A DNA stretch of 64,000 nucleotides from Pecten maximus (lineage: Eukaryota), in the NCBI RefSeq assembly GCF_902652985.1, contig NC_047027.1, positions 24,056,001 through 24,120,000 on the forward strand. Direction: 5' to 3'. Positions within the stretch are counted from its first letter, which is position 1, and each line of letters begins with the position of its first letter. The notes below the pieces were generated by a model. The model searched no databases and was not told the origin of the DNA. It saw only the letters and a program-made list of their open reading frames with translations. Positions 19,977 to 55,455 of the stretch are shown in pieces. The position numbers were made by a program, and so were the translations under genes.

Positions 19977-20603
19977 TCAACAGCCTACAGCTATTAACAC
20001 TAATCAGTTTTAACTAATTTTAACCTTTTATGTCATCATTATACAGTATTCTCTTCACAGTTGTCTGCTTTTACCAGAAACACGTTGAGAGCTATACAAG
20101 TTGATTATTATGTTGGATTTATGATGATATCGTTTAAACATATTACAATCACTGTAAGTAAGAACTCTGTTGTTTGATGTCTTCGTTTATTGTTACATAA
20201 TTTGGATATTGTCACTATTACAGTTTTATTTAAAACATGATATTTCTTTCATTTATTTCCTCCTTTAATCATACAAATTGGGTAAAGATACAGAAGGTAG
20301 TCCATTGCCCTAGTGTTGTACCTATCGATTATATTGAAGGTGGTGTGTTATCCGTCTCGGTTTTTTCTCATGAGGATGGGGATATACGATAGCCGAAAGC
20401 GATCTATCTTCCTTTTTCTGATTTGTTCAGGTTTGACGAAAGACTACGCCCGAATCTAATTTGACGAAATATGATCAAATGTCGACAATGATATAGCAAC
20501 CATTATCTTATTCATCTTCGTTGTTCTGCTGTCGATTTTGATGTGTTCCAGGTGATCACCGAATTAGTTCTCTTGGTATAATATCGATTATATTATATTA
20601 CAG

Positions 20604-23600
20604 GCGAAAACCCGTTTATCTCACCTGGTCTCATACTGATGGACTACGGAACGTACAGTACAGTGTTCAGCAAGTTTGACTCCAACATGGTGAGTTTTAA
20701 GGCGACAATATGTCTACATTTCATTGTCATTTAACGGTAAAGATATTGGAATTAGCTTAAGAAGTAGAGAAAGCCGATACCGTAAAACAATTATACTATG
20801 TATGTTTTAAAAATCGGTTGCTGTTTGGAAAGAATGCTGCACGGTCGCAGCCGAATTGAGTCCCGTGGGTGCGGGAGACGTGTCCGTGTAGAATTCGGCT
20901 TCCTCGCCCCCAAAACGTGTAATCTGATACCACTCGGTTGATATGAGATAATTGAACCAATACGAACATAGACTGTAACTGTATTATCTACTTATTTCGA
21001 TCTTACCTTTTAAAAGAAACAAAATTTTTGCATCTTTTCACTAATGAACATTTTGTTACGACACTGAAGCATGAAAAAAGTCAGAATTAATCAAGAAATA
21101 AAGTTATCAAAAGTCAAGCACAGTGGGTCAATGTCAGCAAATTATAATATATATTATTGTTCAGTGATGGCTTTATGGAGCAAACTTGATTTGAATCATA
21201 AATGTCAAGGAGTTAAGCTAGTTTGTTAGGTTTATCACGACGGGAATCTTATGTTGAGGCAGGGACTCATTGTAGAAGATAGTAGCTACATCATTATACA
21301 ACATAGAGGAGGTCTGTCGCATTTCAACAAGAACAACTAGGATTAAGTGTCTTTCTGAAGTGTCTGTTTTTAGTTTCCCGAGGAAAAAATGGATAGGGAG
21401 TGACGAACCACTCACCTGAGTCTTCATTTGAGGTTATGTGACAAACAATCTAACCAACTGATATCAGCTATCGGTGCCCCTCACTGGATTAAAGGTCAAT
21501 GTCATTTGAGTCCAAAGTTAAAAGACCAAGTGATTCTCTGTATATGGCTCTGCTCTTGATGTGGGAGGTCAAACATCAAGCTACGCTATATGGGCAGAAG
21601 GTGTTTTTAGATGATTTGGGGGATATACTGTCACAAGACGGGGTCCTTTCTTACCTGTCAGTGTTTTAGTTTTGAAGGTATGGAACGATTTAATGACTAA
21701 AAGGGTGTCTATTTAGGGACATTGGATATATCAAATTGACCTGATATCCCTCTCCAAAGACTTGTTTCCTACCTATTTTATGTTTTGTTTGTATTTCATT
21801 CCTCTTGTCTTCGTATTGCCCTGATAACGTTCGCATACCATACCATGTCCTCGGTGCTGCTAAAAAATTGACCCTTTATTTGTCTTTTTGGTCATTGGAT
21901 ATTAATTTGTTTGTCCCCAGCAAAATATTGCCTCTAAATGCGCATCACAAAAGCAAGTTTGGAAATGAAAACCGAGCATATTCCAAGCATCATAACACTT
22001 TGATTCAACTGAAATGAAACGAATATTCTATCTTTAAAACTGAGTTTTGAATTCTCACATTTAATTATTGTTCACATTGTTTTGACATAGGACACAACGA
22101 CACATCTAGCGGAGTATCACAATCGGAGGTTCAGCTCACTGTCTGTGTTCCCGCTCGGCCAGACTTTTGTCGTATATGATAAACGTTACAAAGCTATCTG
22201 CGTAAGTATAAAGCGATCCGTATCTCTATTTCGATATTGAGAAAACGAGTCCAAAATATGACCAAAAGTTTTAAATAAGACATCAGTTTATAAAGATAAC
22301 CTCTCCATAGTACAAGATAGACCACGTTCCTCGGAAAGGTAAGCGTCCCCAGGCTTATCGTAAACACCGTGTGAATTTAAGTCAAATTCAGTTAATGTCA
22401 TGTTCTCAAGGTGAAAGCCGAGGTCGATTCCACGGGAAAACTAAGTATATAGATTTACGTCTAACTGTATATCGTACAAGCAAATCTAGTATATCCAAAT
22501 AAGATCGTATCGAGACATACAAAATGTATGTGTGAATTATTGGCAAATATATCACATTAACATATTGCAATTTGACTAGGTTTTTTTTTTTACAACGTTA
22601 TAAAGTATGATTTAATTTTAATGAAACTATATCAAATAGTATGTACATTACAGCCAATCTTTGTTATCTGGAAGTCGATGGATACTTAAACTCCGATAGT
22701 TAAGATTCTTTATAATTAGATTCGGTTTCCTCAAATAATTGGAGTATTTCAAATTTTTGTCATGAATCTACTGACTTTGACTCTATCAAAGTGAAACATT
22801 TAAGTCGTAATAACAGAACACAATGTTATTGGTTGACGATATACATCATTAATTATTTTAACTGATTACCAATTAATGGGTTTTTTTTTTTTTTTTTGTT
22901 AAAATATTAAAACAAAGCTATGGATTAATCAGACAAATATAGTATTTTCTAAATAGTCCCACAAGATGCGTTTTATCTTATTTCATGTTTTAAAATTGCT
23001 CAAACGTAATTTGAAAACAATTTTTGGTTTCTATATTCGCCATTCTATTTTACAGAAAATAGCATACAACAACGATTTATGGTATCAACCTGTGTGTGCG
23101 GAGACATTTGGAACAGTCAATGGTGGGTAGGTGCTTCAAAAGAAGCATTCTGAACGTCCAGTATATTAGGCTTGCATACCCCCATTAAAACATTCCGAAT
23201 GACTTGTTTGTGCGACATATTTACATTCATAGCACTCTGCAGATTTTCGGATAAACTCGAAAATCTCATTTTTCTTTGTTTATATTTTGTATATTGTTAT
23301 TTGGTACGTATGCAAAGCAATACCTGTTGGCCTATACCCGCCGTGTCCATATTTGAAAGTTATTTTGGAAAACAAATGGCTATATGATATTGCTCTGCAT
23401 ATAAAATAATTTGAGGTCGGGAATCATACCGTATATAACTCGTTATTCTGTCGGTTTCGAATAGAAGGATATCTACACTTTCTCTTCAGTTATTCCAAAT
23501 ATATATTACGAGTAGGGGAAAGATTTTTATATTGAAAAATGTCAAAATAATAGCCATACGAGCAAAATATTTCTGGTATTACTGAAGATACTGTTAGATA

Positions 23601-26600
23601 TTTTGTTTACTACATGTTTTATCGCAAACTTTAACGAGGCAGCTTTAAAATTCTCCCATTGTCGCTTGTAAGCCGTGATTTGATTGGTCAAATAACAAAA
23701 AGTTATATTTTTCATTAGTGAAAAATATCAGAAAAGTAATATGTTTACACTCGCTCATTCTGAATGAATAATTCTCGATAATTCATTGGTAAATATGAAA
23801 TAAATAATCTTATTTTAGGAACTGTTGCTTGACCGAATTTTGTTTACTCTTTCCCTAAATACGTTACAAAATATAAAACACAATGGTGAAGTAACGTGAA
23901 CGAGGACATTTTACGAGTTATCTCGTTTTAACTTGTTGTTTTGACACTGTCTCTAAGGAATGGACGTGGATGATGTTAGAGGTCTCGTTTTCTGGACTGA
24001 CCCCGACTATAACGCCATCATGATGGCACGGATCTCAAACTTGACCCAACACTTTGTGATCGTTGACACATTAGTGGATAAACCGAGTGGTTTAGCTGTA
24101 CATCCGGAAGCCGGGTAAGTTACCTGGCCGTCGATATAGCAATGGGCAGTCATGGTAGTATGTCAGACATGAGATAGCTAGGTAGGTCACGTGATCGCCA
24201 ATATATACAAAATGTAAGTTAATATTTCAAGTGGTTTAGTAATGCATCCGGCAGCCGGGTAAGTTATATGACCGCCTATATATTAGTGGTTAAACAAGGT
24301 AGTATAGTTTTACCTCAGAAACCTAGCTAAGTCTCGTGATCGTCAGTATATCAGAGGATATACTAGGGGGCAGAGTTGTACATCCAGAAGTCACAAGATA
24401 CAACGGAATTAATTTATATCGGCGAAAAGCTATATAATGTCGATGTTGATGTCCCAAAATAGTTATTCCCATCACAAGTTATGTATCTTTTACCTTTCTT
24501 CTAGTATGAATAAACCAATTTTCATACAAATGTATTTTGTATCCATTACAATATAATATTAATATATATATTTGACGTTAATTTACCTGATACCTTGATT
24601 GTCATTCCCCCGCCTTTTTTAGTTTATTGTTTTGGACCGATTTTGGCACATCGCCAACAGTTGAACGATCCACTCTGACAGGGCGAGAACGGCGAACGAT
24701 AATAAGCGGAGGAACACCTTATATGTTGACAATAGACAGGGCTGGTAACAGGTATATTATTTATTTATCTATATATTTATCTATTTATTTATCTGATTAT
24801 TTATTTCCCTGTTGACATTTATTTATTCATTCGTTTATCTATTTAGTTATTTCCATTCATTCATATGAAAAAAAACTGAAAAAAAACTGAGAACACACAA
24901 ATGTAATTATCCAAACTTCTATGTTGAATACAATAGTCAGGCGATATTTGTCTACGTCATACATATCAACAAATACTTTGTCCCTTATTCATTCAAAGAA
25001 TTCCCGCCATAATGCCAATAGACAATGACCCGGCATTAGGTATGTTTTGGAAAAATAAGAAACTGTTATTTATCGCATCGCAACTTGTTTCTAGTAATAT
25101 GAATTTACATAGAACGTCTTCGATCAGTTAATATCTTTTCTACATGTCGTCATTCATTATAAATACAATGTTTCTTTTTTAGCTTTGTCTTTGGTTAATC
25201 AAATTATCACATGACAATCACATGACAATACACAGTTATCAAAATTATGTTGTCAATACCTTAACATGCCTGGGGATACTGCAAATTAGGGATGATTTGA
25301 CAGTAAAATGTCATTTTGATGAAATTAACAGATTATTCTGGATAAACAAGGGCGATAACTCTATTGAGTCATGTGACACTGAAGGAGAACGTCGCCACGT
25401 AATCAGTATAGACATAGGCATGTCGACAGCCTCGTTTGTTTGGAGCAGTCTGGTAGTCTATCAGGTAAGCACTATGGCTTGGAGTAAGTTTTTTGTAGTA
25501 TGGTTTCTAGTTTTTGATTGCTATCAGGTAAATATCACAGATACATATAGTCTTCTCACAGATCTATCTTCTACGACATTCACAACGACTTTTAAGACAT
25601 CGATACGTATTAATCGACGATAAAATAACGAAAATATTCAATTCAACTATTTCTTACTATTTGGTTGCCAGCAGCGGATTAGGAATTCGAATAACTAATC
25701 GCCAGCAGCGGATTGGGGATTAAGTTGTTTATGTTTAAATGTTTTTTTATTGACATTTTGACGTTGGGATTCAAATAGCGAATCCGCTGCAGCAGTCGAT
25801 TGGGGATCTAGTTACATATAAGTATTCTTCTTATAATATAATATTGGGGATTCTAATAACGAATCAGCTTCCCAGCAGTTCATGGCGGGGGTATAAAAAT
25901 ACAATTTGGACATACGAAACTGAATCCCCAATCCGCTGCTAGCGGATTCGTTATTCCAATCCCCAATAACAAATAACGAATCCGCTGCTAACTGCAGCCC
26001 GCTGATTTTTCTCGAGAACTTCGGTTTTCTCCGACAGCAGGACTTTTCGCACACTTCTATCCGGGCCAACAAGCGTGATTATTACAAGTTTATATAAATA
26101 AATAAAGTTGACAAATAAGTTCATATTTTTGCTGTTTTCACTTCTACAGCGGTTTATTATTGTCTTGAACAGACAATACACGAGATATAACCTTTCTCTG
26201 GGACACGGTGCAAAACGTTGTGGCACTTGATTGTGTTATGTCTTTAAATCATTTGAATGTTTTGCTGTTTTCTACTGTGGCTGATTTGTGCCATTTCGTC
26301 TTTTCGTATATTCGTCCCGAAAAGCCAAAACTAAATAAACTTTAATGTTCGTCTTTTCGACTTTTCGCCCCCTTTTAGAAAGACGAAAATCAAAGTTTGT
26401 TCATTTTCGTCTTTTTGGGGCGGAAAGTCGCAAAGGCGAAAAGACGAAAATAATGAACCCGAATTAAAGTCGCTAATTTGCGTGCATTTATTTCTTCTTT
26501 TCGTGGCGAAAGACGAAATATTAGTTTTGTTAATTTTCATTTGTTTCGGGGTGAAAAGACCCAAGAACGAAATGGCACAAATCAGCTACCGTAATTTTCA

Positions 26601-29600
26601 CCTCCTAGGGCCGCTTGTTACTGTCCTGGAGCGACCATAACAGGGCTGGGGCTCTTTCTTGGGGACTTGGGGCAGAAAACCAGCAACTGCGATCTTTCTT
26701 AACATCCTTCAAAGACATTGCCGTTGTAAGGGAGCAGCCCCAATTTCAGGGTATGGAAGCAGGTAGGTTGGTTAGCTTGATACCACTGGCTTAATATTGA
26801 ACATGTATAGCTTTGGGTGTATCATCTTTAAAGTATCAAACCTACCTTTTATTTCAATAATGTGAAGTAACCCGGATCTGACCTCGTCGTGTGTGGCGGG
26901 TGTCATTGATAAGTTACGCTTTCGGAACACCGGATTTTATTTTATTTTTACTTTTTAGATGACCTCCATGTAAACTTGTATTTTCATATTAACCATCGTT
27001 CTGTTTAAGATCTCCGATATCATATACACTGCTTATCACAAACAAATATACGAAAATAATTTAATTTTGTATGAAACACGCATTTTCATTGGCTGAAATA
27101 ATTTTGTTATACCTCCATAACAAAATTTTTGACGTTGCGAAATGTAACGTCATTTTTGATTGGCTGATGACTTTGCGTAATAATTTATCACAGAAAAGAG
27201 TTCGCCAAAGAAAGTGAAATATCTTGGTGTGTATAAGACGAAATTAAATTATAAGAATTAACATTAATTATTTTTTCTGTTATACAGTCATAACATAAAA
27301 AACTGGAGTGTACTCTCTTCATAAACCGCTTCGCGGTTTATTTAGAGTACACTCCAGTTTTTTCTGTTATGACTGTATAAGAGAAAAAATAATTGATGTT
27401 AATCCTTAAAGTAACTCGCCTGTAGAAATATATACAATAAACACCAGCAAATGATAAAGAATGATCAGATGGTTTCAAAAACTGAAACCTATCAGACCAG
27501 AATCCACATGCTAAAGAAGCATTACAAAATAATTTCTTAGGAACGCGTTAAATTAGTTATTTTATTTTATTTTTTAAAAAAATGAGCGTTTTAATGGGCA
27601 TCATGTATATAAATTTGTAACAATTTACATCAGCCTACTTTCATTTTTGAAAGATCGTGATTGATGTCACAGGAAAGAAAACGAGCACACTCCTGCTGGT
27701 TCTTTCTATATTTTATTACCGGAGATTAGGACATAACTTGATACAAAAGAAAACCCCTGAAACACAAAATAGCCTGTATAAGTATGATATACATACGTAG
27801 CCTACATTTCTCGACAAAATATTAACTGACTGTAATAATTCTATCTATTAAATAAAGTTATAATTATTAGTCATTCTATTATATTTGTCAGGATAACATA
27901 CCTTCCAAGACTGTTATGTCTTGTAAAACGGCAAGTCTGTACACATGTCTGTTACATAATTGGTCACCGGACCCCAGAGGATATGTCCTACCGACCTATG
28001 AACGGCTAATGCGGCGTTCTACCCTAACTCATCGGTTTTACTATTCTCGCTCTCACTCTTGCACGATTTCTTACACTTTCATACCCTAATTTACATATAA
28101 GTCGTAAACACCACCAAATATGGACATACACAGTATGGACTACACGTACATGACACTACGTTACTAATTTACACAGGGTACTTTCCACATTACAACACAG
28201 CACTGACAAGTACATGCTACGTGTATAGACAATTCACAATCTTATATCAATTAATTATTTCAATTAATTAAATTGCACCTGTGACATTGATCTTTGTTGG
28301 AGATGTGGAACTTCTACTATAATTCAGGTTGTCAATCAATTTTTCAGAATGCGTTGATTGTTTCTGTCATCTTCACTCATTGTATAGGAATGGTGCCCGC
28401 ACGAGGGAATGCGGTAAGTTCACAACTGATATAAACATTAAAATATATAATCTCGTAATTTGTTTATATTAAATATATTAATGAATTCGTATTGAATACA
28501 CGACGGTATAGCTGAAAGACGCGGGGCAACGTGAATGAAGGTTCGCCAATTCGAGTCGGGCATGGTGTTTCATCGAACAAGATAATTCACCCAGTTGATT
28601 GTGTTCCAGTCGAACGGCTGATATGAATTGCACAATAATGTATCAGATTTATAAATAAACTTACACGCATATTTGTGACTAACTTTGATTGAATAAATAT
28701 CACATTTGTTTAGAAAATCCGCAAAACTCTGACGCTGTGCATCAACATTGGAATATTCCGCCATGCCTAGTCTGCTTCATTAAGATGTCACGTGACATCA
28801 AACACAGCCGTAAACAAATTACACATGGCGAGTGAGGATAAATTCCAATTAAAGATCGTTTTTTCTTCAATTACTTATGTTATGGTAACATGTATAGATA
28901 TTAAATAAGTAAAGAATATCAAAAGCATTAAAAATATTATTCACAAAAATGGATTTACTCGTGCGTAATGTCGCATAAATTTCAGCATCACAGGGCACAC
29001 GCTTGTCTTGTAAACAAAAATGAGTGGCATGCATATGAATGAAGGAATTTGCTACGAATTAAGTACCAAGATCAGACAAATTCACAATATATTTGTAAAA
29101 AATTTATTGTATTGTCAGCGCAGTAGCAAGTGTAACTTCGTGCATAACTTTATTACGAACATGTCGCGCTGTCGAGACCCCTTGCGGGACCTCTTTCGCG
29201 GACCTCTTTCGCCCTCTTCCATCTTTTCATCTGGTTGTCGGTATTTATACGACTTTTATGACATTTGCTATTTTGTCGTGTCCGATTACAGTGACCAATT
29301 AGCTAATCACAACCTCGGAGAGTCGCGTCCGTCATTTTCGTATTTGTTCGTGGACTTGTCTTCGAATGCTCGTATTGATAGTTGTTGGCGGCGATTAACT
29401 CCCGCGCTTCGGGTCGAAGTTACATTTTCAAAAGCTTTAATTTTGAAGAAACTGTTATCTTCGGACTCTGAGTGCTGTACTACTGTAAAGTTTATAACCT
29501 TAACTGATTGAGAAAAATACAACAATCCCGTTTCCGTTTATTGTTATAGCATCAACTCATTTCAACGACGGAATACCCATTTGAATGAGTATGAGGTAGA

Positions 29601-32600
29601 GTGAGACATGTCGTACATATTAATCTGTAAGCGACAATATGGCAGCTCCGGGTGTGTTCTCCCTATGGCGTTAAGGTGTTGGCTAGTTGATAAGGACGAA
29701 ATAACCACTGATAATAATGTTCAGCCGCTTTGATATAACTTTGAGATAGTGATATAAATGAGTCTCAAATTATTATTATTATTATACTTAAATCTTCACT
29801 TTATTTGTTTCGTTTGTATGAATTGTTAGCTTGCTTTGAGAAAAATTTAATCGGGGAATTTTCAGCCCCAGGATTTCCATTTATCCAGTTCGTAACTTTC
29901 TATTCCTGGTGAATAATTCTTACAATATTCACACATATTCGTATTGCTAAATTATCTAATATCCGTAATCATTTATCCTGAATTACATGCATTCAAGTGC
30001 ATATCCTCTTCCATTTTGTCATTCATATTAAGTTATATAATATCCGTTCTGGAACTTTTGACCAACGCATAACTGACACGCGTCCTAGAAAGTCTAAACA
30101 GTTGTAAGAACTGAAACGAGTTTTAGGAAGGCGAAAGAGTTGTAAGAACTGTAATGAAGCCTAGAAAGGCGAAACTGTTGCATGTTGCCCCTGACATAAC
30201 TGATAAGCCCTAGAAAGATAACAAATTTTAAGAACTGAAACGAGTCCTGGAAAGGCGAAACCGCTGTAAGATGGCCATACCATCACTTAAACGAGACGAA
30301 GAAAGACGAAGCCGATGCATTATGAAGCTAGTATCACTGACCAGTCCTAGAGAGACGAAATAAATGTATGGTGCTCTTAGTGCCACGGGAAAAGACAGCA
30401 CATGTGTATGATATGCACCCCTTACTCATTAGATAAAGTGTCACAATATATCTGCAGAAAAAAATAGAAGAAAGTAGAGAACAGAACACACGAAACTGTT
30501 GAAGATGAAAAAATACATTTATACTGATATTTAGCATCATTTCTTGGTCATGTCGTTCATATTAAATTCTTAGGTTAAAAGTTGATGAGCACTAACTTGA
30601 GTCGGCTGTGATTGGAGATTTTAGAGTGTTCAATTTGTTGTGGTGTAATTAAAAGTTTTAGCAAAGGAGATGCATTTTTTGTTGCGTAAATTCTCAAAAC
30701 CGACCATAATTCCCTCTTTGATTTGAATTGTTAAATAACTATTTTTGCGATATTGCCTTAACATTGAATATCGATCACAAAATATAAAGCGACAATTGTA
30801 CCATGATTGCTACGCATTCTGTTTCAGAATCTGAATATAGTTCCCATGGTTACGTATTCTTCACGACGTCAAGAGGGTTATATCGTATGGAGGGATACCC
30901 ACTCACCACGTCACAGACTCCCCACGCGACCCTAGTTTACGGGACCAATCTTTCGGTTTTTACCACTGACTCAGTCAATGAGAAGATATTTGCTTATAGC
31001 CATGAAAGCGAGGTAGGTGACAAAGCTCCAGTCTTAGAGTCTCAGAGTCCATGTAAAACAGAAAATGACGTAAGCTTATTTCGACGTGGTCATGGAATCG
31101 TTTCAAGTGATCGAACATGCGATAATGTGTCTGGAATATGTTTATCCATGAGACATGGGCCAATATGTTTTTGGAATAAATATTTATGTAAACATTTTAT
31201 TTTTTCTTGAATCTGTTTGTAAGATATAGTAATATTGCTGTTTTATCATCGGTGCAGAAATATATATCAACAGTCGCACAATAACAGGCTAAATAAATTG
31301 TTTTCCATGTCACCAGATTTTGATGAATTAATTATGATCCAATGTTCAATTCAGCAAACGATCCATCAGTCATACGATATACACGGGATTTAAATTAAAG
31401 TTGGGTTCTTTTTTTTTGCTTTTTGTTTTTTTGTTTGTTTTTTTTTTGTTGTTTTTTTTTTTTTTTTGTAATTCAGATTTATTGACAAGTTTTTGCAAAA
31501 CGACCGAATAAAGCGTCAACAAAATAAAATCTGATACAGAACGAAAAATTTGGAGCATTTTTTGAGTATCACAGTAATGGTTATAGCAATGAATGTTTAG
31601 GGCCCTCGCATATGCATATAGTGATTTTTACCAACATATGAAATAAGCATTGAAAGTTTTAGCAAAGGAGATGCATTTTTTGTTGCGTAAATTCTCAAAA
31701 CCGACCATAATTCCCTCTTTGATTTGAATTGTTAAATAACTATTTTTGCGATATTGCCTTAACATTGAATATCGATCACCAGATAATTTTACAAGACGAT
31801 GTTTTAAATTTGGACTCAGAGCCAGGCGAATATGACTATCCACCAAAGAAAACTAGCCAAAACCTATAATGATGACGCGCTTACATGCTCATACATGTAT
31901 GTTCAAATATGCATACATACATAAATACATACAAATGTACACAAACGCTCATTCAAGTACACCTTCAATCCGACGGCTAGAAAAACGCAAAAATTAAAAG
32001 AAGCAGCTTAATGAAGGATTGTACAAATGGCATACATAGGTTCGTTATGTTTTGATTAATAGGAAATGTTAGAGATCTTCATCATTATCTAACTTACTTT
32101 TTTTCTATGATGTAAAACTTTCTCGCTCTCTTGTCAATATATTCGATTATTCTTATGTCAATATCCGGTTGATTTCGATAACATTATTTTATTGGACGTT
32201 CATATTTTGAGTATCAATTTGGAACTTTTCAATTCGAAAGCAATGCAATGCCGTGAGCTGACCTATTGACTTCGGGATTCATGGTATAGTCACCTTACTA
32301 TTGATTAAGACGTTGAACTTGAGATATGTGTTTGTTACGAAACCCCTAATGGTTGGGTTATTGTTTAACCTCAGTCTATAATAGAAATTACCCAGCATGC
32401 TCGGACAGGAAATTGGATGTCACGAGACCTCATAATGGTAGCAGCGACAGTAAAATGTAAGTATGAGTATACAACTAGTATGCATTTGAGAAATATTATG
32501 TGAATATATATATTTGCGAATAATTAATTTTTCTTTGTTTTCATGGTAAATACTCAAATGTGATTGGTCGAAAAATTCTTTTCATTTCTATGAAAGAAAT

Positions 32601-35600: not shown

Positions 35601-38600
35601 GCATAAAGATGAAATATGATATCTTAATTTTTCGATATATTGACAGGCGAAGAGCATTTTACAACGTATCAAACCATATCAAAAACATGATGAAAGGCGG
35701 GAGAAAATTCATTGTATAAAAAGTGTATCAACTTTGTTGTTGTGATGATTAGACCAAAGTTTAAAAGTCCGACGGAAAGCATTAAGCATTATGAAAAATT
35801 GTTTTAAAATTCAAATGTCAGGGCAAAAGCATTATACATTTCAGGAAGTTATAGCACAATCTTAATGAAAAGCGAAGAGCAATATACAATGCAGACAATT
35901 GCATCAAAGCTATAGTGACTGGAAACATAATATTTTGTAAAACTTTTATCAAAGTTATAACTACAGACGAAGAGAATTTTACATTTTCTAAAATATAAAT
36001 CAAAATTATAATGGAATATCTCAAATTATCTGCAATAAATTGATGTAGTGATGGAGTATGACAGCAGAATGGCATTATATTGAAGTATTACAATACATTG
36101 TAGAGTTGATGGACAATTCGTTCCTTTTGGTTGTCGATCAACGTGCCCCGGCTATATATCAGTACTACAATGGCCACCAGAGACGCACTATCGAACGGTA
36201 TACAGTTGTCCCAGCTGTCGGTCTGAAACAACCGTACGCCGTTGCATACGACGACAGAGCAAAATATGTAAGTACAAGTTTGATCAATTTCGCATTATGA
36301 AAATGTAAATGAAGTTGTTGTTGGTCGATATTCGACATATTTAGCTAGATTTAAACTTTCCCTTCCATAGAAATAAGACACAAGATCACATGCTTTTTGA
36401 TAATCACATTTCTCTGTACCGGAGGTTATCAGGAATGTCCTCATTCACACGTCCATTCGGCCAAAAATGTGCATTGCAAACAAAACACCATGCTTGTTAC
36501 ACTCGGTGGAGCACTTTTACAAAGTTTAAATGAGTTACCTCAAACTGATATAAAAAAAAAACAACGGAAAACCAAGTTTTGTTTTTTAATCAATCATGTA
36601 TTTTATCTGGTGGGGATATAGAAAAAATTAGGTTGGAAGGAGAAATGAAAACTCTCTGTCAATAGGAATATGAAGGTAGGTATCCGCTTTCCTGAGTTAC
36701 CTGTATTAAGGTGACCTATACATTCAATTGCGATCACCTTTTGTCCGGCGTCATGCGCCGTTCGTCGAGCGTCGTCCGTCGTAAACAATTTACATTTTTA
36801 ACTTCTTCTCAATTACCAACAGGCCCAGAGACATGATACTGGGTATATAGCATGCTGACATGAAGGGCTGCAAAGTTTGTTCAAATGGATGACCTTAACC
36901 TTCAGGTCCAAGTAGTCAAATATGCTAAGATATATCAGACCTCAGGTAGCATTTAAGGTCCATGGGCGTCTTGGCACAAAAAAAAATGTTTTATATTAAT
37001 GAACCCCCCGCCCAAAATAAAATTGTTTTTCTCATCGTTTCATTTACGTGAATATGTATAATCTGCAATAGTGTATTCAGCCTTATATTTGCCTTTAATT
37101 ATGGTGATTTAAAATACGAGCATAATTTGAGGTTTTTTTTAAAGGATGACACCCTTTCGGAAAATTATTGTCCTCAAAATTAGGACCGTGGCAAGAATAG
37201 GACAGTGACGATGTGTTTTTATTTTTACAGATATATTGGTCAGATATTGAGCAGTTTACCGTAAGTCGGATACACAAAAATGGACATTCCCAGGAAATAG
37301 TGTATGGAGAGCAATATTTGTGTGAGTATTCCACAGTTACAGATTTGAAATAGTGATTTTATAAAACATGCTCTTCGGGCTGGTTGGTGTGAATTAAAAG
37401 TGGCTTTAGTATAATATATCTAGTATAATATATGTTCAAATTTAACTCACAGACTGGTTTTGATTTACCAAAGTCTATTCATATTGACGTGAAGGCTATA
37501 AATTACAACATGATGGCCAAACATTTTTTTTTTTTTTTTTTCTTTTTCTTTTGTCATGCATCTAAAAATAATAACACATAGAAATGTAAATAATTTCGGC
37601 GAAAATATCACTGTGAGCGTTCGTATTTTGTCATTCTACATATTGATAGAAGCATAATTCGTAATCGTTTTCTACGGTTGGACGATAATTAAAATGTAAA
37701 CAAAATTTCTTTGTAGATGTCTTAGACATTGCCATGAGTGTCTCTACACGCCTACTGTTTATCGCGGACTACTCCAGGGATCGTATAATTGCTCTCAATG
37801 TCAACACTCTGCGATCCATGCCCTTTTCCAGCCCTGTTAGTCGTGTCTATGGACTGTGTTTGAGCCCCACTAATAGGTATAATCTTCTTCCACAGTCAAA
37901 GCTCAGATTAATTTTTCTTCGTCATAAACCAGCATTCAATTTCATTCTATTTTTATGAAGCTTTAATTTGATTTGCGATATCACCAAATTAAAAATAAGA
38001 TTATTGTTTCAGTTTTTTGTTCGATATTTACATTCTGAATATAGGCCAATACAAAAGCAGGCATCATTCTTGACCGGGAATAAGACATTTGTTGAAAATT
38101 TCATTCATATTTCCAGAAAATGTAGGCCTCCAATGGAGGTTTTATTATGACTATTATGTAGATCTAACAAAACAGTCCCATTCACTTCCTCCAAAGCCTT
38201 GATGATCTCATTTGTATTTTATTTCCGACTCATAACCATTCCTGCAAGTTAAGCCTGTGAGATTTTTCACCACATTGGCCTGGGGTATTTAATGTTTGGG
38301 TATGCTTACAGATCGGGCAGAAGCGGACGGGTGGCTTGAGCACTATAATGTTTTCATACGCGAAGAATGATATTAATCGAGTCGAATTCCTGGACAAATG
38401 AAATAGATTGAACTTGGTAGTTTATTGAGTCTAACTTAAGTGGAAATATTTGCAGTTGAACATTTTAGAAATCTGTTCCTATTTTACTGGGTTTTAGTTT
38501 GTTTGTTTGTTTGTTTGTTTGTTTGTTTGTTTGTCTCTAGATACTTGTACGCATCCGGGTATGGAGCGACTCCAAACTTGGTGCGTATTGATATACAAAC

Positions 38601-41600
38601 TGGACTACTTTCAACAGAAGGACTGCCATGGCTTGTGTTGCCTGGGAAGATCGTCGTTCATGATACAGGTATCGTCGTACCCAATAGCAATCAAAAACGA
38701 ATGATACAGAAGCAACATTATCAAAACATTTAACGAATGAAGTTTGCTAAGAATATTTATATATCTGTTATTTATTTTTGAAGCCCATATTCAAACACTG
38801 ATATTCTTGATTTTAATCCATTCTAAGAAAAACGGGCTATATAACGTTATAAAGAGACAATAAATTGAACTCGAAAAATTCCAACACAGATTTATTAGTT
38901 TTTCAAATATATATTTTATGTTATTTATTTTTTTGTTCTTTTATTTCTTATTCTAATTTTTTTTTTTTAATTATTTATTTATTTATTACACGTTTTATCG
39001 AATCATAAAACCATTCTGCTTAAAATCCTACAGGTATTTACCTGATTGAACAGTACCTGAGGGCAATTGTTCGAATTGATGGTAACGGTCATCAGCAGGA
39101 TATCAAACAGTTCCTGGAAGGTCACGAGCTACAGTTTATCACAGCCGACGATGCTAACCTTTATTGGACAGAACGAAATACAAAAATGATTTATAGGTAA
39201 CACTCCTCCTTCATTAACTCTGAAATATGACACATAGAGAATGTAAGTTATATAAGCTGTTGACAGGTGTTACAGGTAACAAGTTCTCATTAACTGTGAA
39301 ATCTGACACAAAGATATTTTAAGTTGTATATAAGCTTTTAATAGGTGTTACAGGTAAAGTGCCCTCTTCCTTAACTGTGACATCTGACACATAGAGAATG
39401 TACGTCATATAAGCTGGTACAGGTGTTACAGGTCCTAATTAACTGTGAAATCCAGCTGGTACAGGTGTTACAGGTAACACACCCTGCTCATTAACCATGA
39501 AATCCTGAACAAAGAACTATGCCGCAAAGAGAATGTACGTTTCAAATGCTTGAAAACAGATTAACAAAAATATACATTTTCGGATGCGATGCATCAATTT
39601 GGTTGAAATATTGTTTGAAAACATGTTTATGTTTAACACAAACAACGATTAAAACTCATTGTTTGATATGTCACAGTCGTTTACAGATAGGTAATTATTT
39701 ACAGCATACTATATCAACACTTCAAGTCCGAAATTAGGGATAGGCTTCGATTCACTTTTGATTTAAGTTTGTTCTGACTAAAATATTAAATGCACACAAA
39801 TGTCAGTGACTTTCATAATTTATACAAAACCTCTAAATAGTATGTGTAAACAAGACTTTTGTCGCTTTAGTCATGAAAATATTAAACTACACTATTATTT
39901 GACCACTTGAGTTTGCAGCATATATATATATATATATGTATATAATATATAGCTCTCCAAAAATACCCTGGTAAATATTGTATTAGACCCCTGCCATTTG
40001 AAAAACGGTGGGACTATAGGTTTAACCTCCGTTCGTCTGCCCGTCTGTCCGTCTGTCTGTCTGTCACGCAATAGTTGTCCGGACAACTACCTCCTAAAGT
40101 ATTACTCCGATCTTAGCGAAACTTGGTATACATGATCAGTATAACATGTAATTGTGCATCCAACATTTTTTTTTTTTTTTCGAAAACCCATTGTTCAAAA
40201 AAAGGGGGGAAATGAATAGGTTCACTTTTAGCTCAGGCAGGGGACTTTGTATTGCTATTGCAATACTATCCATCCTTGTTATCAATGTAATGAAATGAAC
40301 TATTTTTTTGTGATTTCAGATTAAATCTACATACAAGGGAAGAATCACAAGTAGGGCTAGAGGGAACGTTGGTACACCCTGCTGGTCTCGTGTACTTCGG
40401 ATTGACAAGGAGGACATGGCCAGGTACTTGAAACTGGTTGTAATATTATCTAGGATGATAGATGAAATCTGAATCATATTACATGCAGCATATTTCCTGT
40501 TGTACATGTAGATGCTACCTTTGTCCGCTGTGATGAACTGTACCTCATGGCTTCCTAGAAACTATACGATGTCCTTTTGGTTATAGGTATTATTGATCCG
40601 GATAACGGTTGATCTAGTTTAATAATTCTGCAGATTTACTTCTAGCTGAAATACTGATATAGATATTTTTGTATTGTTAAAAATTTTCTTCTACACAAGA
40701 AAATAAAGAAGATACAGGTAAACAAGGGTCACGTGATTCATTTGAGATGATTTACGAATTTATATTTTTGAATTAAAAATGTTATCTCAAAATGCATAGC
40801 AGATGTATTAAATACAAACAATAAGAACACTTAATTACTCTTTGTAAAGCTTACGTATATTAATTGCATTGCATGAGCGTAAAGCGTATTTTGCATTCCG
40901 TTATAGACGTAACCTGTTCCAGTCCGTGTTCCGGTACTTGCATACCAGCCGGATATGGCCTCACAATCTGTCTCCCTACCTCAAATACGCGTCATATTGA
41001 CCTCCCTTACAATGGTGTGTACTATCATATGATCAAATAGTATTTGGGATGTAAAAACAGTATTCGTATTGTCTTTGTGTTAAATTACATTAATATCATG
41101 ACCTTAAACCACAGGAGTCATCACATTGGATTTTAATGTCTTCAAATTCTCAAATGAATATAAACAAAATATCTTAATACGAATAATAGGACATCCCGCG
41201 TTATTTGTTGTAATTGCGTTTTTATTTGTACGGGCTTAACGTAACTAAAATTAGGAAAACAATAGATGTGAAAAAAAGATTAAAATGTTGACACTTTTCA
41301 TTATCAAAGTTAATACAATCCATTTGTCTGTAGATATCTGCACGGTACCAAACGACGCAGACATCATATTTGGTCGGGTGGCAGATCTGCGAGCAGGTTC
41401 CCGCGTACCTGGAGGGACAACATTCAGGATACAATGTCTGCCCGCCCATAGCATCGTAGGGTCCGACACCAGCATCTGTCGACATAGTAACTGGACAAAT
41501 ATTCCTAGGTGTAAACCAGGTAGTGATCATTTTTATTTCGAGTATTAATGTCATAGGGCAGTCACATGTAAGTCGTATTGAAGTCACATGTAAGTCATAT

Positions 41601-44600
41601 TGAAGCTACATATAAGTAATAATGAAGTCACATGTCAGTCATATTGAAGTCACATGTCAGTCATATTGAATTCTTATGTTAGTCATATTAAAGTCCCATG
41701 TCAGTCATATTGAAGTCCCATGTCAGTCATATTGAAGTCACATGTGTATCATATTGAAGTCACATGTCAGTCATTTTGAAGTCACATATAAGTTATATTG
41801 AAGTCACATATAAGTTATATTGAAGTCTCATGTCAGTCATATTGAATTCTTATGTCAGTCATATTGAAGTCAAATGTCAGTCATATTGAAGTCACATGTC
41901 AGTCATATTGAAGTCACAGCTAAGTCATATTGAAATCATATGTAAGTCATATTGAATCACATATAAGTTATACTGAAGTCACATGTAAGTCATATTGAAG
42001 TCACATTAGGAATAATAGGACAGTCAAATATTATTTCATCAATATATATGTTGTAGACACGAAAATTTACGGATCAAGAAATGGCGGTTGGACGATCTTC
42101 ACTCAATCCGGGAATTTTTATGTGTATTCATGGATGAATACAGTCAAGGTGCTGGTGATTGGCGGCGGAGGGGGTGGTTACCAGGCTACTAACCATGGCG
42201 ACAGCACCGGAAACGGTGAAAGGTCAAGGTTTGGAAACGTGCCCTCGCTTATCTCTACAGCAGGTGGGGGTCGCGGAGGGACCTCTCTGTCAGGTATCTC
42301 CTATTTTGCATTTTTGTAGTTTTAGCTTCTTCTCATTGTCAGTTTTTCAGAGATCGATTATTGCTTAAATAAGTAAACAAGAAGTGACTATTTCAAAGTT
42401 TATTGTTGAAATTTATATTACTTCAACATTCCAGTTAACAGTTATAAAATTTGAATTTTCTGCCGTTAAGTCTTTTAATGTTAAGTTCAAGAAAAGAAAA
42501 ATCCTGGTCACAGTGACCTATTTAAGCACCCGCGCAATTTTTATTCAAAATCCTTTAAAATCAACCACCATACAACTTGCATTAATGCCAGTCAATGGAT
42601 GAGGATCAAGACTTGAAATATGTAAGTTGCCGACCCCCTAAGGACACATTTTGCTGGTGACCGGGCCAAAAACAGTGCCATGCATATGTGCATTTTCTCT
42701 TTACATTGCTTTTTTGCTCATTCGCCGGATGTATCGCTCCGTTAACAGTCAGGGCCATGTTAAGACGGAAACTCCTTACTTACAGTAGCTGGTGGCTACC
42801 TAACAGAGCACATAGGGGAGGCATGTTACATGCAATCGAGGGCAATTTAGTTAAAGTGCTATGTCCAAAGACACAACCACGTCATCACAGACCGTCCATT
42901 TCTCAGTTTTCCGAGAAACACAAATCGCCAAGGGAAAGAAGCGTCATTGGATGGTCCCCTGAGGCAATGTAGGTCAATGGTTTAGCCGAAATATGGTAGC
43001 TATAATATCTGGAAAGCTGGGTTAAGAACACATCATTTTTATCAGGTTCTTTTGCCGTCATTTTAAGCTATTTCGAACATTATTTGTGTGGACCGTAGAC
43101 AGTTTAAAACATAATATATCATTGCATTACATTACTCTAGGTCAAATCAGGGTCTGACCAGCTATCATTTTTTCAGAGCATCTTCTACATACATAAGGCA
43201 CCATAAACGAAGGACGCATATGGACATCAGCCTACAACTCTAGTCCAAACTACACACTGACAATAACCTTTTATAGTCTTTTATATATGACAAGGGTTAA
43301 ATGTAAAATAAAACTCCATCGCAGTATTTACCTTGAAAATGCCTGGAAAAAATACCTTGAAAATTGTATGACGAGACCTTACATGTATATGTAATCTAAT
43401 GGCAAGTTGTCTCTCTTTATGAGCCATAATCGCATGTTATCCACTGTTTGACAAATACTCAGACGTTTATGACATGACCTTCCTTATTAGTCCCCTGCCG
43501 TTTGAAAAACGGGGGAACTATAGGCTTAGCCTCCGTCCGTCTGTCTGTCTGTCTGTCTCTGTCTGTCACGCAATAGTTGTCCGGACAACTCCTCCTAAAC
43601 TACTACTCCGATCTTAACAAAAAATGGGAAATGAATAGGTGCACTTCTAGCTCAGGCAGGGGACTTTGAGCTCAGTCAGTGTTAGTTGGTGAAACATTTC
43701 CTCTGGATTTTTCCATATTATCCTCTTTTTTTATCCAAACCCTAACTATCACCAGTTGTTGAAGACTGTTTGGACAATTTCGCAATTTATGGATACTGTT
43801 TGTAATCAAAGCATACCTGGGAAAGTATGTTGCAAGAGGAGAACGGAAAACATTACAAGTTGAATAAACAATGCGAACAATATTCCTTATGTTAGGGATC
43901 TGACAGTTGACCATAATATTCACTAGAGCTTTCAACTGCCGAATACGACCATTTCCTGACTGGATAACACAGTGCTCCTTTGTTACATGTCTAGATCCAA
44001 TGAACTCCCCAGTGGGATGCTGAATCACACCTTTCTTTAAAAGCATGATATTTCTATTTTGATTCGAAAATCATTCAGCAGTTCTGTTACATAAAGGAAA
44101 CTACTGTTAATATGTAGAATGTCATTATTTTGAAACCATGTCTTAATATATCTACATTTCTGAATACATCCCCTGCATTGCCAGCTGCGATTTCTTTTCG
44201 AACGCTATGATTTTGCAAACAAAAAAAAAAAAAAACAAACAAAAAATCCCACGAACTAGGCCCAAGTGGGACAACCGTGAAATATTAGCACAGTTTGATT
44301 TATAAAGTATACAATATTGTTCTAATAAGTCTAATATGTTAAGTAGGAGATTAAGCAAAGAGTAAGAATCTAAAAAAAAAATGAATGTTACAGTAATTTC
44401 TAAATTTAATTTTTGATGTGTCGAAAGGTGGAGCTGGTGGAGTGGGCGAAAGGAACTCTGGTTCCGCCGGAAATTACTCCAATGTCACGTGTTCTCGTGG
44501 AGGTTCCATATGGAATAATGTGCCAAGCAAGACACACAGCTTGTTCTGTGCCAACGACTACGGTTCGCATAGCTGTTTCTCAGGTAGGCAAAAGTAAAAT

Positions 44601-45388
44601 ATCCAGTCCAATTTGAAAATGAAAGATTGAAGATGAAAATACTCATAAGTTATATTATAGAATATTTCTATGTGTTTTGTTTTGTGTTTAATGATGAATT
44701 GACCCAAGCCGGTTATTTCGCGTAAATAATATTAACGGAAACAGTAATCAGCTTAGTAATATTTCTCCGGAATAATTTAGACTACTATCAAAATATATGT
44801 TACATTAACGTTATATACATGGTATATTGTATAACACACCACGCTATCTTCTTGTCATACCTTACAGACGAGAGGTAAACAATAAAAGTTGTGCAACACG
44901 TCATCTCTTAAGGTACATGATTTTATACATCACACTATTTCATCTTGTTGGTATGGATTACAGATGAGGCGTAAACAATAATGTTTACAATTACCATATC
45001 GCCTCTATAGATAAGTGTCACATTTCACCCCTCTCACGTCTTTTGTTATTTATTTATAGAAATACCTGACGAGGCCTATAGTACTGTCAATCCAAGAACA
45101 AGACGTGACTGCCGCATCGACACAACATGCAAAAATTTCGGCGACGGGTCGGAGTCGCGACAGGGTGGATCAGGAGGGGGAGGTGGCTACTCAAGAACAA
45201 GCCGATCAATCTCCGCCTATCGCAATAGTCTGATCCCTGTAGAAGTAGGGCGTGGTGGAGAGCCGTCTTACGCAATTTCCGGAGGGGGCGTGGTCATCAT
45301 CTGGTGGGGTTGGGACGAAGAACTGAGCGATGTGGAGACAGCCGACATAGAAGCGCTTTGTTCTCAAACGACTAATGTAGAACCTTAA
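20604..45388 (+). CDS. LRP-related mosaic protein, probably secreted: 3 x YWTD beta-propeller with EGF-type spacers, Sushi/CCP, C-terminal glycine-rich domain; ~1210 aa plus unresolved start exon. Exons: 20604-20689, 22091-22201, 23056-23122, 23958-24114, 24623-24751, 25332-25464, 26609-26750, 28348-28413, 30828-31012, 32375-32456, 33034-33181, 33653-33899, 34150-34291, 35170-35289, 36104-36267, 37231-37321, 37717-37876, 38541-38668, 39034-39196, 40320-40423, 40907-41014, 41334-41519, 42057-42293, 44428-44583, 45060-45388
   Basis: All 25 exons have AG/GT borders and chain in phase with no stop (3641 nt). Motifs: GMDVDDVRGLVFWTD, GLAVHPEAGLLFWTDFGTSPTVERS, ITVDWMSRNIFWVE, AVAYDDRAKYIYWSD, NLYWTE; EGF PCMEANGGCDQLCLPNPSTRSCHCGFGY; Sushi CTVP...IQCLP...SICRHSNWTNIPRC; Gly-rich FTQSGNF...VKVLVIGGGGGG...GGSGGGGGY...IPVEVGRGG...GGVVIIWW. 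Exons 20604-20689 and 28348-28413 are the least certain. Confidence 0.85.
25665..25995. repeat. Foldback-like cluster of direct and inverted CAGCAGCGGATTGGGGATT motifs
   Basis: Motif repeated on + (25669, 25703, ~25790) and as AATCCCCAATCCGCTGCT / GAATCCGCTGC on - (25780, 25923, 25978). Confidence 0.6.
26135..26225 (+). pseudogene. Dead duplicate (pseudo-exon) of exon 26609-26750
   Basis: Reads SGLLLS*TDNTR against GRLLLSWSDHNR in the live exon (TGG to TGA); shares the TTTTCAC acceptor context. Confidence 0.6.
26275..26591. mobile_element. MITE with ~25-bp TIRs (CGGTGGCTGATTTGTGCCATTTCGT), TA TSD
   Basis: TIRs and TA on both sides; second copy at 47800-48178. Confidence 0.85.
27060..27409. 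mobile_element. Hairpin-ended element (about 160-bp palindrome 27251-27409 centred on AACCGCTTCGCGGTT)
   Basis: Long inverted repeat TAAGAATTAACAT...ATGTTAATCCTTA; upstream CATTGGCTGA motifs. Confidence 0.7.
30080..30360. repeat. Degenerate ~40-bp minisatellite (CTAGAAAGGCGAAACAGTTGTAAGAACTG...)
   Basis: About 6-7 recurring units. Confidence 0.65.
30652..31779. repeat. Near-identical ~127-bp direct repeats (30652-30778 and 31653-31779) flanking exon 30828-31012
   Basis: Identical apart from about one homopolymer-length difference. Confidence 0.9.
32528..32790. mobile_element. Hairpin-ended repeat, copy 2 (right arm truncated)
   Basis: Matches 5412-5690. Confidence 0.75.
35305..35440. repeat. 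Degenerate 21-bp intronic minisatellite
   Basis: 7-residue periodicity in translation (LNIEVPS LNLVVPF VNTVVPR LNVDVPP VNSDVPV VKIDVST) downstream of the 35290 donor. Confidence 0.6.
36704..36975 (+). mobile_element. pearl/HINE-like (Helentron-associated) non-autonomous element
   Basis: AAGGTGA.CTA...GATCAC head, CGTC-type microsatellite, TTTACATTTTAACTTCTTCTC core, 3' CAGGTAGC...GGTCCATGGGCGTCTTG end. Confidence 0.6.
39190..39545. repeat. ~78-bp tandem repeat starting at a splice donor (AGGTAACA...TTAACTGTGAAATCTGACAC)
   Basis: 4-5 imperfect units immediately after exon 39034-39196. Confidence 0.8.
39980..40280 (+). mobile_element. pearl/HINE-like element, family 2 copy 1
   Basis: Subterminal IR AG(A/T)CCCCTGCC...GGCAGGGGACT, (GTCT/GTCC)n tract, 3' hairpin GTATTGC..GCAATAC. 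Confidence 0.75.
41561..42006. repeat. 22-bp minisatellite (GTCACATGTCAGTCATATTGAA), ~20 copies
   Basis: Directly visible; fills most of the intron between the Sushi and Gly-rich exons. Confidence 0.95.
43483..43668 (+). mobile_element. pearl/HINE-like element, family 2 copy 2
   Basis: Matches 39980-40250 (AGTCCCCTGCC...GGCAGGGGACT). Confidence 0.75.
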
Positions 45389-48275: not shown

Positions 48276-48501
48276 GGTTTGCTTTGGTTTGTTCTTGTTT
48301 AACGTCCTATTAACAATCAGGGTCATTTAAGGACGTGCCAGGTTTTGGAGGTGGAGGAAAGCCGGAGTACCCGGAGAAAAACCACCGGCCTACGGTCAGT
48401 ACCTGGCAACTGCCCCACGTAGGTTTCGAACTCGCAACCCAGAGGTGGGGGGCTAGTGATAAAGTGTCGGGACACCTTAACCACTCGGCCACCGCGGCCC
48501 C
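48276..48501 (-). mobile_element. Full-length V-domain tRNA-SINE inserted into the C1q coding exon
   Basis: Reverse complement of 14829-15049; CCCATA duplicated at 48270-48275 and 48499-48504. Confidence 0.92.
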
Positions 48502-49799
48502 ATATGTTATAGCGTAGCTGTAGAACAGGGTGTTGTGTTTGACACCGTTGTGACAAATGTTGGGAATTGCTACAGCGGCAACACGGGTGTCTTTACCTGC
48601 TGCAAGTCTGGCACGTATTTCATCACTTGGGCAATTGACGTCAAAGCAGGGACTTATGTTAATACAGAACTGATGATGAATACGTCATCCATGGCTATCA
48701 ATCGTGGAGGTGATGCTAACAATCTTTCAACAAGCAAGTATGTCGGTTGTAGTTCATTTGCATATCGGTGATGAGGTGTGGATTAGAGTCATGTCTCGCT
48801 CTTCGGATAACTCGGATATCATCGGAAGCAAAACATCTTTAACCGGCTTTCTCAAACAATGACCAAATAAACATTCTGATGTCTCTGAGTATCAGCCAAA
48901 CTTTTTTCTGATTCTATATATGATTCTAAACGATATGACAGTGTATTGTACATTTATTAAGCGTGATTTATATAAACGTCTGTCCCTGTTATACTGCTTT
49001 TATTAAACGAGAAAGAATGCAAGTGTTTTATGTATTTCATAATAACACTTATGAATAAACTGGATTAAAACATTAAAAGAGGAAGAAATATCATGTTTAT
49101 CTTACCGTTCTACACCAATAGTATTCAGTGAATAAAAGCTGATGTTGGTTGCTTACTATAAACTTTTTTGCTTGTTCGGGTGTAAAAAACAATCAGGAAA
49201 AATATTAAATTTCGTATCATCGTATCTTTAATAAAACATTCATTAATTAAAGGTGCTCACAAAATCAATAAAAGTGACAGTTTATCTTCACCTGCAGGTA
49301 AATTGGCAAATCCCCGTGAATGTTGCCAATCAGCTTGTGGTTCAATTCTGGTTGTAAGAGATAATCCCCCTGTGGAATTATCCTTTCATATGAAGGCATG
49401 TCAAAAACCGGCACAGCGACGTGATGAAGTATGTAAGGGAAGTAACTCCGCTGTATGTGTAATCCTATTCACATCATAATATATAAAAACAAGAACGTTT
49501 ATTTGATTTCTTCACTCACGAAATTGACCTTTTGTACAAAATTTCCAAATTACGATATTTCTGTGAAATATCAGAAGTCCCTAAAAACTCTTATTGTATA
49601 TTAAATTTCTCATCAAATGTCTAGACGTAGAGAGAATAGGCATGACAAATGATAGTATTGCTACAACGCCTGCGGTGGTGCAAAGATCTCTCAATTTAAT
49701 CTTCATTGCAATCGTATAAGATTTTTTCCGTTTTGTTTCCCTACTTGTTGACCATGTCGATCCAATACTCTGTAGACTTTGAATCTTGGAATACTTCAA

Positions 49800-52902: not shown

Positions 52903-53019
52903 CTCCTCCCCTCAAAGATCAAGGTAATCTTTATCAATGTAATACAATAAAAATGCCCTAAAGATTTCCTTGTCAATTACTATTGAAATTACTTTAAACT
53001 GAAACAATCCTATATGCGT

Positions 53020-55339: not shown

Positions 55340-55430
55340 ACAAAAATTTGAAAAAATCTATAAAAATGATAAAGTATAACTTTTATCTCAAAAATGTATA
55401 TAAACAGTAATCATTTCAGAATACTATGCC

Positions 55431-55448: not shown

Positions 55449-55455
55449 AAAGGTT

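Follow-up and report, generated by a model that had tools for sequence, protein, structure and literature searches.

We describe a gene of the scallop Pecten maximus that lies in a stretch of 64,000 nucleotides of contig NC_047027.1 (positions 24,056,001 to 24,120,000 of the forward strand; hereafter, the window), which is AT-rich and includes no runs of N. The gene occupies positions 17581-45388 of the + strand in 26 coding exons, and it is the one annotated in RefSeq as XP_033759059.1 ("LRP4-like", 1236 residues; P0027). It encodes three YWTD propellers in tandem that alternate with EGF-type modules, then a Sushi domain, and finally a glycine-rich domain that closes the protein. Two C1q-domain genes lie downstream. 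A preliminary description of this DNA, made from the sequence alone, had presented the gene as hidden, which it is not: besides the RefSeq entry, eight or more other mollusc species have corresponding models.

We rebuilt the gene model without the exon list of the preliminary description, using a collinear tblastn alignment of the Mizuhopecten orthologue (P0001, 1234 residues) together with a search of splice sites and phases. P0001 is collinear with 25 segments of the window, and it is also the protein found when the last exon by itself is searched against the full database, with 75% identity at its very C-terminus. The resulting chain of 25 exons on the + strand (20604-45388) has compatible phases and no stop at any split codon. 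All 25 exons have an AG acceptor, exons 1-24 have a GT donor, and exon 25 closes at the stop. The chain is 3653 nucleotides long and, with one upstream nucleotide, makes 1217 codons plus TAA, so that the earlier claim of 25 GT-AG exons in phase over about 1210 codons with no stop is recovered independently. That model was right in the exons it listed and incomplete in missing the first coding one. Exon 1 opens at a phase-1 acceptor and therefore requires a further 5' exon, which we find at 17581-17638 (exon 0). Its translation is exactly residues 1-19 of XP_033759059.1, its start context is ataccATGG, its donor is ACAG|gttagt, and upstream the frame is closed by a stop at 17551. An independent scan for an ATG, a hydrophobic core and a phase-1 donor also proposed exon 0, which ranked 13th by hydrophobicity. 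Another candidate for the signal-peptide exon at 20370-20430, with the weak donor gtttga, was dropped because 17581-17638 is the RefSeq N-terminus. All 26 exon translations are found in XP_033759059.1, exact and contiguous, and we have very little doubt about the gene and its architecture as described here.

Exon 0 provides the ATG, a hydrophobic leader of 19 residues that resembles a signal peptide, and one extra nucleotide; the leader region covers residues 1-20. Propeller 1 (residues 21-298) starts in exon 1 (20604-20689; phase 1 in and 0 out, residues 21-48) and continues through exon 2 (22091-22201), exon 3 (23056-23122), exon 4 (23958-24114; an FWTD blade, Ldl_recept_b E 0.0031), exon 5 (24623-24751; another FWTD blade, with Ldl_recept_b at 23.1 bits, above the cut-off) and exon 6 (25332-25464) to its end in exon 7 (26609-26762). 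Exon 8 (28348-28413; residues 299-321) is a reduced EGF remnant with four cysteines at 300, 303, 305 and 320. Propeller 2 (residues 322-588) runs from exon 9 (30828-31012) over exon 10 (32375-32456), exon 11 (33034-33181; an FWVE blade, Ldl_recept_b 23 bits) and exon 12 (33653-33899) to exon 13 (34150-34291). A complete EGF with six cysteines between 591 and 626 (residues 589-629) is encoded by exon 14 (35170-35289), where the stretch 35142-35312 matches FXa_inhibition at 33.7 bits and also EGF_LRP2. Propeller 3 (residues 630-898) starts in exon 15 (36104-36267) and includes exon 16 (37231-37321; a YWSD blade), exon 17 (37717-37876), exon 18 (38541-38668), exon 19 (39034-39196; a YWTE blade) and, at its end, exon 20 (40320-40423). 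Exon 21 (40907-41014; residues 899-935) is another EGF remnant, with four cysteines at 902-920, and exon 22 (41334-41519; residues 936-996) is the Sushi/CCP domain, with cysteines at 937, 969, 983 and 994. The glycine-rich domain (residues 997-1236, 240 residues) is divided over three exons. Exon 23 (42057-42293) holds its first third, with the leading strands and the GGGGGG run, and a weak Gly_rich_2 match over 41999-42316; exon 24 (44428-44583) holds the middle with a cysteine-containing insert; exon 25 (45060-45388) holds the last third and ends in a short C-terminal tail with the TAA. The 3' untranslated region (UTR) extends from 45389 to 45817 at least. Six of these exons are symmetric, of phase 1-1: both EGF remnants (exons 8 and 21), the EGF (14), the Sushi (22) and the first two glycine-rich exons (23 and 24). 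Symmetric phase 1-1 exons are the usual signature of exon shuffling.

The identity of the modules is supported by profiles, by protein sequences of known structure and by a structural model. Each propeller is about 270 residues long and precedes either the EGF or one of the 4-cysteine remnants. In XP_033759059.1, Ldl_recept_b (PF00058) reaches 67.6 bits, and FXa_inhibition/EGF_LRP2 are also found. Against the PDB sequences, phmmer aligns the propellers with LRP2 (1.8e-84), LRP4 (9.8e-84) and LRP6 (about 1e-38), and a family profile (A1) finds the LRP propellers with an E-value of 2.5e-234. The Sushi exon alone (41255-41545) scores 22.1 bits against a Pfam cut-off of 20.7 for PF00084 (17.4 bits in the full-length scan, under that cut-off), and it matches factor H and beta2-GPI chains in the PDB sequences with an E-value of about 1e-4. 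The full-length AlphaFold model of a scallop relative (P0028) consists of three all-beta blocks with a predicted local distance difference test (pLDDT) of roughly 75-88. With this model as the query, Foldseek ranks LRP4 from the agrin/MuSK complex first in the PDB (E 2.7e-44, 906 columns), ahead of megalin and LRP6. Pfam, the cysteine pattern and the exon map all agree with the domain order, from propeller to glycine-rich end, that the preliminary description had proposed.

Proteins of the LRP/LDLR family combine YWTD-EGF units with LDL-A repeats, a transmembrane helix and a cytoplasmic tail. The scallop protein resembles the ectodomain of LRP4, LRP5, LRP6 and LRP2 in having tandem YWTD propellers with an EGF-type module after each, but it has three such modules instead of four, two of its EGFs are cut to four cysteines, and it ends in Sushi and glycine-rich domains with no LDL-A repeat, transmembrane helix or cytoplasmic tail. 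Pfam finds no Ldl_recept_a at E<=1 in XP_033759059.1 or in the orthologues P0001, P0026, P0028 and P0029, and the cysteine positions leave no space for an LDL-A repeat. A hydropathy scan identifies no transmembrane helix: over windows of 19 residues, the Kyte-Doolittle score peaks at 1.47, within a propeller. The position of the C-terminus and stop is conserved among orthologues. The absence of LDL-A repeats and of a membrane helix, which the preliminary description had also reported and with which the contigs of the 3' UTR (below) agree, removes two features that define an LRP receptor, and therefore the protein is not one; the names "LRP4-like", "LRP5-like" and "LRP1-like" given by RefSeq are misleading for this family. 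Given the signal-peptide exon, it is reasonable to call the protein secreted, and we consider it very probable that it is both secreted and soluble. Nidogen is an example of a YWTD propeller that functions in a soluble matrix protein without LDL-A repeats. The scallop propellers match it (PDB 1npe, E 8.4e-14), although nidogen has one propeller together with G2 and rod domains, and neither a Sushi nor a glycine-rich domain.

The gene is expressed as a single transcript. Part of the region 40800-45500 is present in 20 of the 24 same-organism sequencing runs listed, and 15 of those 20 (labelled or guessed to be RNA, or of a kind not stated) include 13-18% of the words of the region, which is near the share taken by exons. 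When contigs from four runs, each of a different study, are placed on 40300-46299, their depth is confined to exons 20-25 (with exon 20 covered in all 4 runs), the 3' UTR and the positions just downstream, and one intronic repeat, apart from faint coverage of intron 23 at 42700-43099. The contigs join 40423|40907, 41014|41334, 41519|42057, 42293|44428 and 44583|45060, all of them GT..AG and each in 2-4 runs. In all four runs, the unplaced 5' ends of the contigs are identical to window positions 39165-39194, the end of exon 19. These loose ends and the five joints therefore confirm six junctions, from 19|20 to 24|25, and exons 21-24 have RNA joints on both sides. One contig of 1494 nucleotides goes from exon 19 to position 45716 in the 3' UTR, and another of 1741 nucleotides reaches more than 1 kb further upstream. 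Past the stop the sequence is contiguous with exon 25 and has no further splice (contig X10 to 45716, contig X6 to 45817), and therefore there is no downstream transmembrane exon. The contigs show the opposite of separate genes or of a silent locus, and they join propeller 3, Sushi and glycine-rich exons in one transcript, as the preliminary description had it. A cDNA contig from another scallop (L001, 4529 nucleotides) extends from the propellers through the glycine-rich domain in one open reading frame (ORF). Upstream of this 1173-residue ORF, L001 has another ORF of 67 residues (3-206, + strand). Because P0028, the protein of this contig, begins at about residue 62 of its orthologues, L001 probably has a frameshift or an assembly error near its 5' end.

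The same architecture is found in the scallops Mizuhopecten and Ylistrum, in the further scallop of the cDNA contig, in Potamilus (Unionida), in Mactra and in the cephalopod Argonauta, and also, in shorter models, in the limpets Lottia and Patella. The combination proposed for this gene thus does recur across molluscs, in bivalves, limpets and an argonaut, and is not confined to it. Our domain-restricted searches started from P0001 and from the Patella protein P0020, and since glycine words are very common, the family counts are lower bounds; the search with the P0001 C-terminus returns at least 4 scallop proteins, 1 from a unionid and 1 from an argonaut. No oyster or mussel appears among the species-identified matches listed, a hint from these sequence searches that the family may be patchy. 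The introns that flank the Sushi coincide in Pecten and Patella, and an intron inside the glycine-rich domain splits the same aligned glycine in both (G1076 in Pecten, G350 in Patella). Therefore, the fusion and these introns predate the split of bivalves and gastropods. The Pecten intron 24|25 has no counterpart in Patella. Between mollusc classes, the glycine-rich domain is 32-36% identical versus 21-28% for the propellers, the first figure being inflated by invariant glycines. In Patella vulgata, the locus is annotated as two models, a 378-residue Ldl_recept_b/EGF protein (L005:1-2456) directly upstream of a 507-residue one (L005:3001-9894). The second model begins inside a propeller, and the true Patella gene is probably full length.

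Within the last 240 residues, 19% are glycines. The alignment of 9 complete and 10 partial sequences shows conserved blocks rather than low complexity: a leading strand into GGGGGG, several GGxGG, cysteines, and a final VxVGxGGxPSY...GxGxVVVxWG. About 50 columns are invariant from scallop to limpet to argonaut, and these include residues other than glycine. In P. maximus, the domain has a single copy at E<=1e-3 (918-Mb assembly; locus C13:24056001-24120000), and we find no stand-alone glycine-rich proteins of 130-415 residues at E<=1e-3. Outside molluscs, the Branchiostoma lanceolatum protein 'F2' (P0021) has two copies of the terminal motif (IxVxVGxAGxPxYxxPGxGxVVVxWG, 50% identical), at residues 126-151 and 682-707. 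The amphioxus proteins with the terminal motif (P0021 and P0013) are multidomain, with Fz, Ig and trypsin, and these copies indicate that the domain type is not exclusive to molluscs. In Solemya velum, P0016 (536 residues) combines a DNA_pol_B_2 fragment with the C-terminal third of a glycine-rich domain, and this annotation is probably chimeric, spanning a transposon insertion.

The structural prediction is what associates this domain with phages. We folded the glycine-rich domain of P0028 with AlphaFold using the 19-row alignment A1. The model has a pLDDT of 74.8 and a predicted template modelling (TM) score of 0.76, and 84 of its residues, with ordered strands, are at a pLDDT of 90 or more. 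A Foldseek search of the PDB with the model gives weak E-values, with all of the top 13 rows being phage tail proteins and ALK/LTK glycine-rich domains. In VIA-align comparisons with the Foldseek list and with 48,161 representatives, the best match is the tail fibre of cyanophage Pam3 (7ypx_A; Z 8.6, root-mean-square deviation (rmsd) 3.2 A, 134 residues), and second comes the tail tip of mycobacteriophage Bxb1, which aligns over 126 residues with Z 6.5. No unrelated jelly roll or cupin goes above Z 5.3, over about 73 residues, and the ALK/LTK TG domains have Z 3.0-3.8 with rmsd 2.7-4.1 A over 85-109 residues. Amongst the predicted viral structures in BFVD there are 59 matches at E<=1e-3; the top one is a 237-residue Satyrvirus protein (E 1.3e-11, TM score 0.59), and the remaining ones are mostly phage glycine-rich-domain and tail-fibre proteins. 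In gp24 of Pam3, the loops of a TNF-like domain build a glycine-rich bundle of four layers, and the protein recognises the host receptor (PMC9608196). As modelled, the scallop domain would share with Pam3 gp24 (PDB 7YPX) and the Bxb1 tail tip (9D93) a TNF-like jelly roll and a bundle of glycine-rich loops. It differs from the phage fibre tips in having no significant sequence match to them and an insert of about 40 residues with cysteines, and in being split by introns, lacking the N-terminal trimerising helices and forming the last part of an extracellular protein of animals. On the strength of this model, we find it likely that the scallop domain has a fold of the phage-tip type, and a similar degree of confidence applies to its being closer to the phage version than to that of ALK. 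The label "phage-tail-like" chosen in the preliminary description is in line with the predicted fold.

Our best overall explanation, to which we give a probability of about 60%, is that the gene encodes a secreted, multivalent binding protein with a phage-tip-like domain at its end. The way in which such a protein would act is more tentative. By analogy with known systems, it may be an adaptor with several binding sites, a role to which we give somewhat less than even odds. Protein partners would attach to the top faces of the three propellers, as in LRP propellers, with LRP4/5/6 and nidogen as the models; the Sushi and EGF units would serve as spacers; and the glycine-rich tip, in analogy to phage fibre tips and to ALK/LTK, would bind a surface or matrix target, either a glycan or a protein, and possibly a microbial one. 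A microbial target would speak for a part in pattern recognition, as the preliminary description had suggested, but the target may equally be a matrix component or a signalling ligand.

Several results weigh against this explanation. PF21722 (Gly_rich_2) reaches 10.5 bits in this protein and 15-20 bits in the orthologues P0026, P0028, P0001, P0020 and P0029, versus a gathering score of 24.3, and genome-wide searches with PF21722 and PF12810 (ALK_LTK_GRD) hit other loci and not this gene. PHROGs and NCBIfam give no match for the glycine-rich domain, and neither does tblastn against 50,697 phage records. The profile of the C-terminal domain (A3) finds in the PDB only the Gly-Ser linkers of single-chain variable fragment (scFv) and fusion constructs. 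The phage-tip link is based on a structure predicted from a shallow alignment of 19 rows, in which model residues 109-149 (the cysteine-rich insert) and the tail have low confidence. The signal peptide is called from hydrophobicity and from the orthologues. Other searches are in agreement with these: phmmer against the PDB sequences finds nothing within residues 997-1236, and profile A1 against the PDB is swamped by propeller columns. In favour of the phage link, an ESM language-model search has phage Gly_rich_2 families as the nearest clusters (0.89), which we regard only as a lead. Membership of the domain in Gly_rich_2 is not established by sequence.

An unlikely alternative is that the protein is a soluble signalling modulator of the LRP type, in which Wnt-, Dkk-, sclerostin- or agrin-like ligands would dock on the propeller-EGF units, as such ligands do on LRP5/6 and LRP4, and the C-terminal domain would only tether or oligomerise the decoy. 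The N-terminal 900 residues do have their best matches in LRP4 (in the agrin/MuSK complex), LRP2 and LRP6 E1-E4, and the orthologues go by LRP4/5/1-like in RefSeq. The identity to the LRP propellers is, however, only about 20%, and across mollusc classes the propellers lag behind the glycine-rich domain in conservation, which would be odd for a core signalling surface. The lack of oysters and mussels among the listed matches, with the patchy family that it suggests, also argues against a signalling role of this kind.

As for where the C-terminal domain comes from, one scenario is that an early mollusc acquired the receptor-binding tip of a phage or giant virus, which was then split by introns and shuffled in phase 1 next to a Sushi and the propellers; another is that animals have had two lineages of the ALK-type TG fold since ancient times, this domain being the second. 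Both are speculative, and we would not bet on this account of its origin. If the viral origin were true, molluscs would have a secreted microbe-binding receptor without a counterpart in other animals.

A different possibility, which we judge improbable, is that the C-terminal domain is a TG domain of the ALK/LTK type inherited within animals, and that the protein is secreted to trap or present an ALKAL-like cytokine. The TG supradomain of ALK/LTK (PF12810), also extracellular and made of TNF-like and polyglycine parts, is ligand-binding. Roughly half of the 25 best Foldseek rows from the PDB are TG structures of ALK and LTK, and the weak structural similarity of the model to them comes with 18-22% identity. 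The fold of Pam3 gp24 itself resembles that of C. elegans ALK (PMC9608196). Nevertheless, the Z values for ALK/LTK are far under that of the phage fibres, PF12810 has no match to XP_033759059.1 at E<=1, and, unlike ALK and LTK, the scallop protein lacks a kinase and a transmembrane helix, and its domain is not followed by an EGF-like module. The only locus in the genome that passes ALK_LTK_GRD is C3:44082161-44082328 (- strand, 28.8 bits), which judging from this profile match is presumably the scallop ALK/LTK homologue.

A further reading takes the glycine-rich end for a structural segment of low complexity (an elastomer, or shell or byssus matrix), and the protein for a matrix component. It is suggested by the glycine content, and it seems to us quite improbable, considering the column-by-column conservation from scallop to limpet to argonaut, the ordered, high-confidence strands of the model and the specificity of the fold matches. 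Finally, the reading of the long model as an annotation chimera of two adjacent genes, for which one could cite the division of the Patella locus, is already contradicted by the single RNA contigs of four studies that span propeller 3, Sushi and glycine-rich exons and by the cDNA contig of the other scallop with the whole ORF, and we give it almost no weight.

We have found no publication on these accessions, on PF21722 or on this combination of domains, in accordance with the earlier remark that the architecture is not recognised among characterised proteins. None of the modules is of a new kind, and RefSeq already has the gene model; the novelty lies in recognising an undescribed mollusc family in which propellers of the LRP type are combined with a polyglycine domain that is predicted to be phage-tip-like. 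If the fold prediction holds, ALK and LTK would cease to be the only animal proteins known to have this unusual polyglycine fold, and the family would provide a concrete case in which to ask whether descent, transfer or convergence explains its presence in both animals and phages.

The rest of the window includes other genes and several repeats. The C1q neighbours mentioned in the preliminary description are present, as two tandem genes on the + strand with exons at 47019-47303 and 48481-48768 for the first, and at 60453-60770 and 63342-63797 for the second. Their C1q domains have E-values of 2.6e-10 and 6.4e-24, and each gene has a very similar upstream exon that is coiled-coil-like. Their adjacency alone is not evidence of function. 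Between both C1q genes there is a long terminal repeat (LTR) retroelement on the - strand (52250-56710), with a near-identical pair of ORFs at 52250-52865 and 56095-56710 as the LTR candidates; between these, its gag, with Retrotrans_gag and a zinc knuckle, occupies 54182-55357, and its aspartyl protease 53199-54194. At the other end of the window, long open frames at 3384-4753 (- strand) look by their motifs like the remnant of a non-LTR reverse transcriptase, with no Pfam match at E<=0.01. Within the gene, similar translated motifs identify copies of an interspersed repeat in intron 23 (43300-43700) and in intron 19 (39946-40071). The copy at 43300-43700 has an RNA contig depth of 134-145 versus 2-17 on the exons, in contigs that continue into unrelated sequence, and it is probably an expressed transposable element. 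Intron 22 contains a minisatellite of 22 bp (41560-42006; 20.4 copies, 85% match), and intron 19 a tandem repeat of 78 bp with 2.9 copies (39209-39433).

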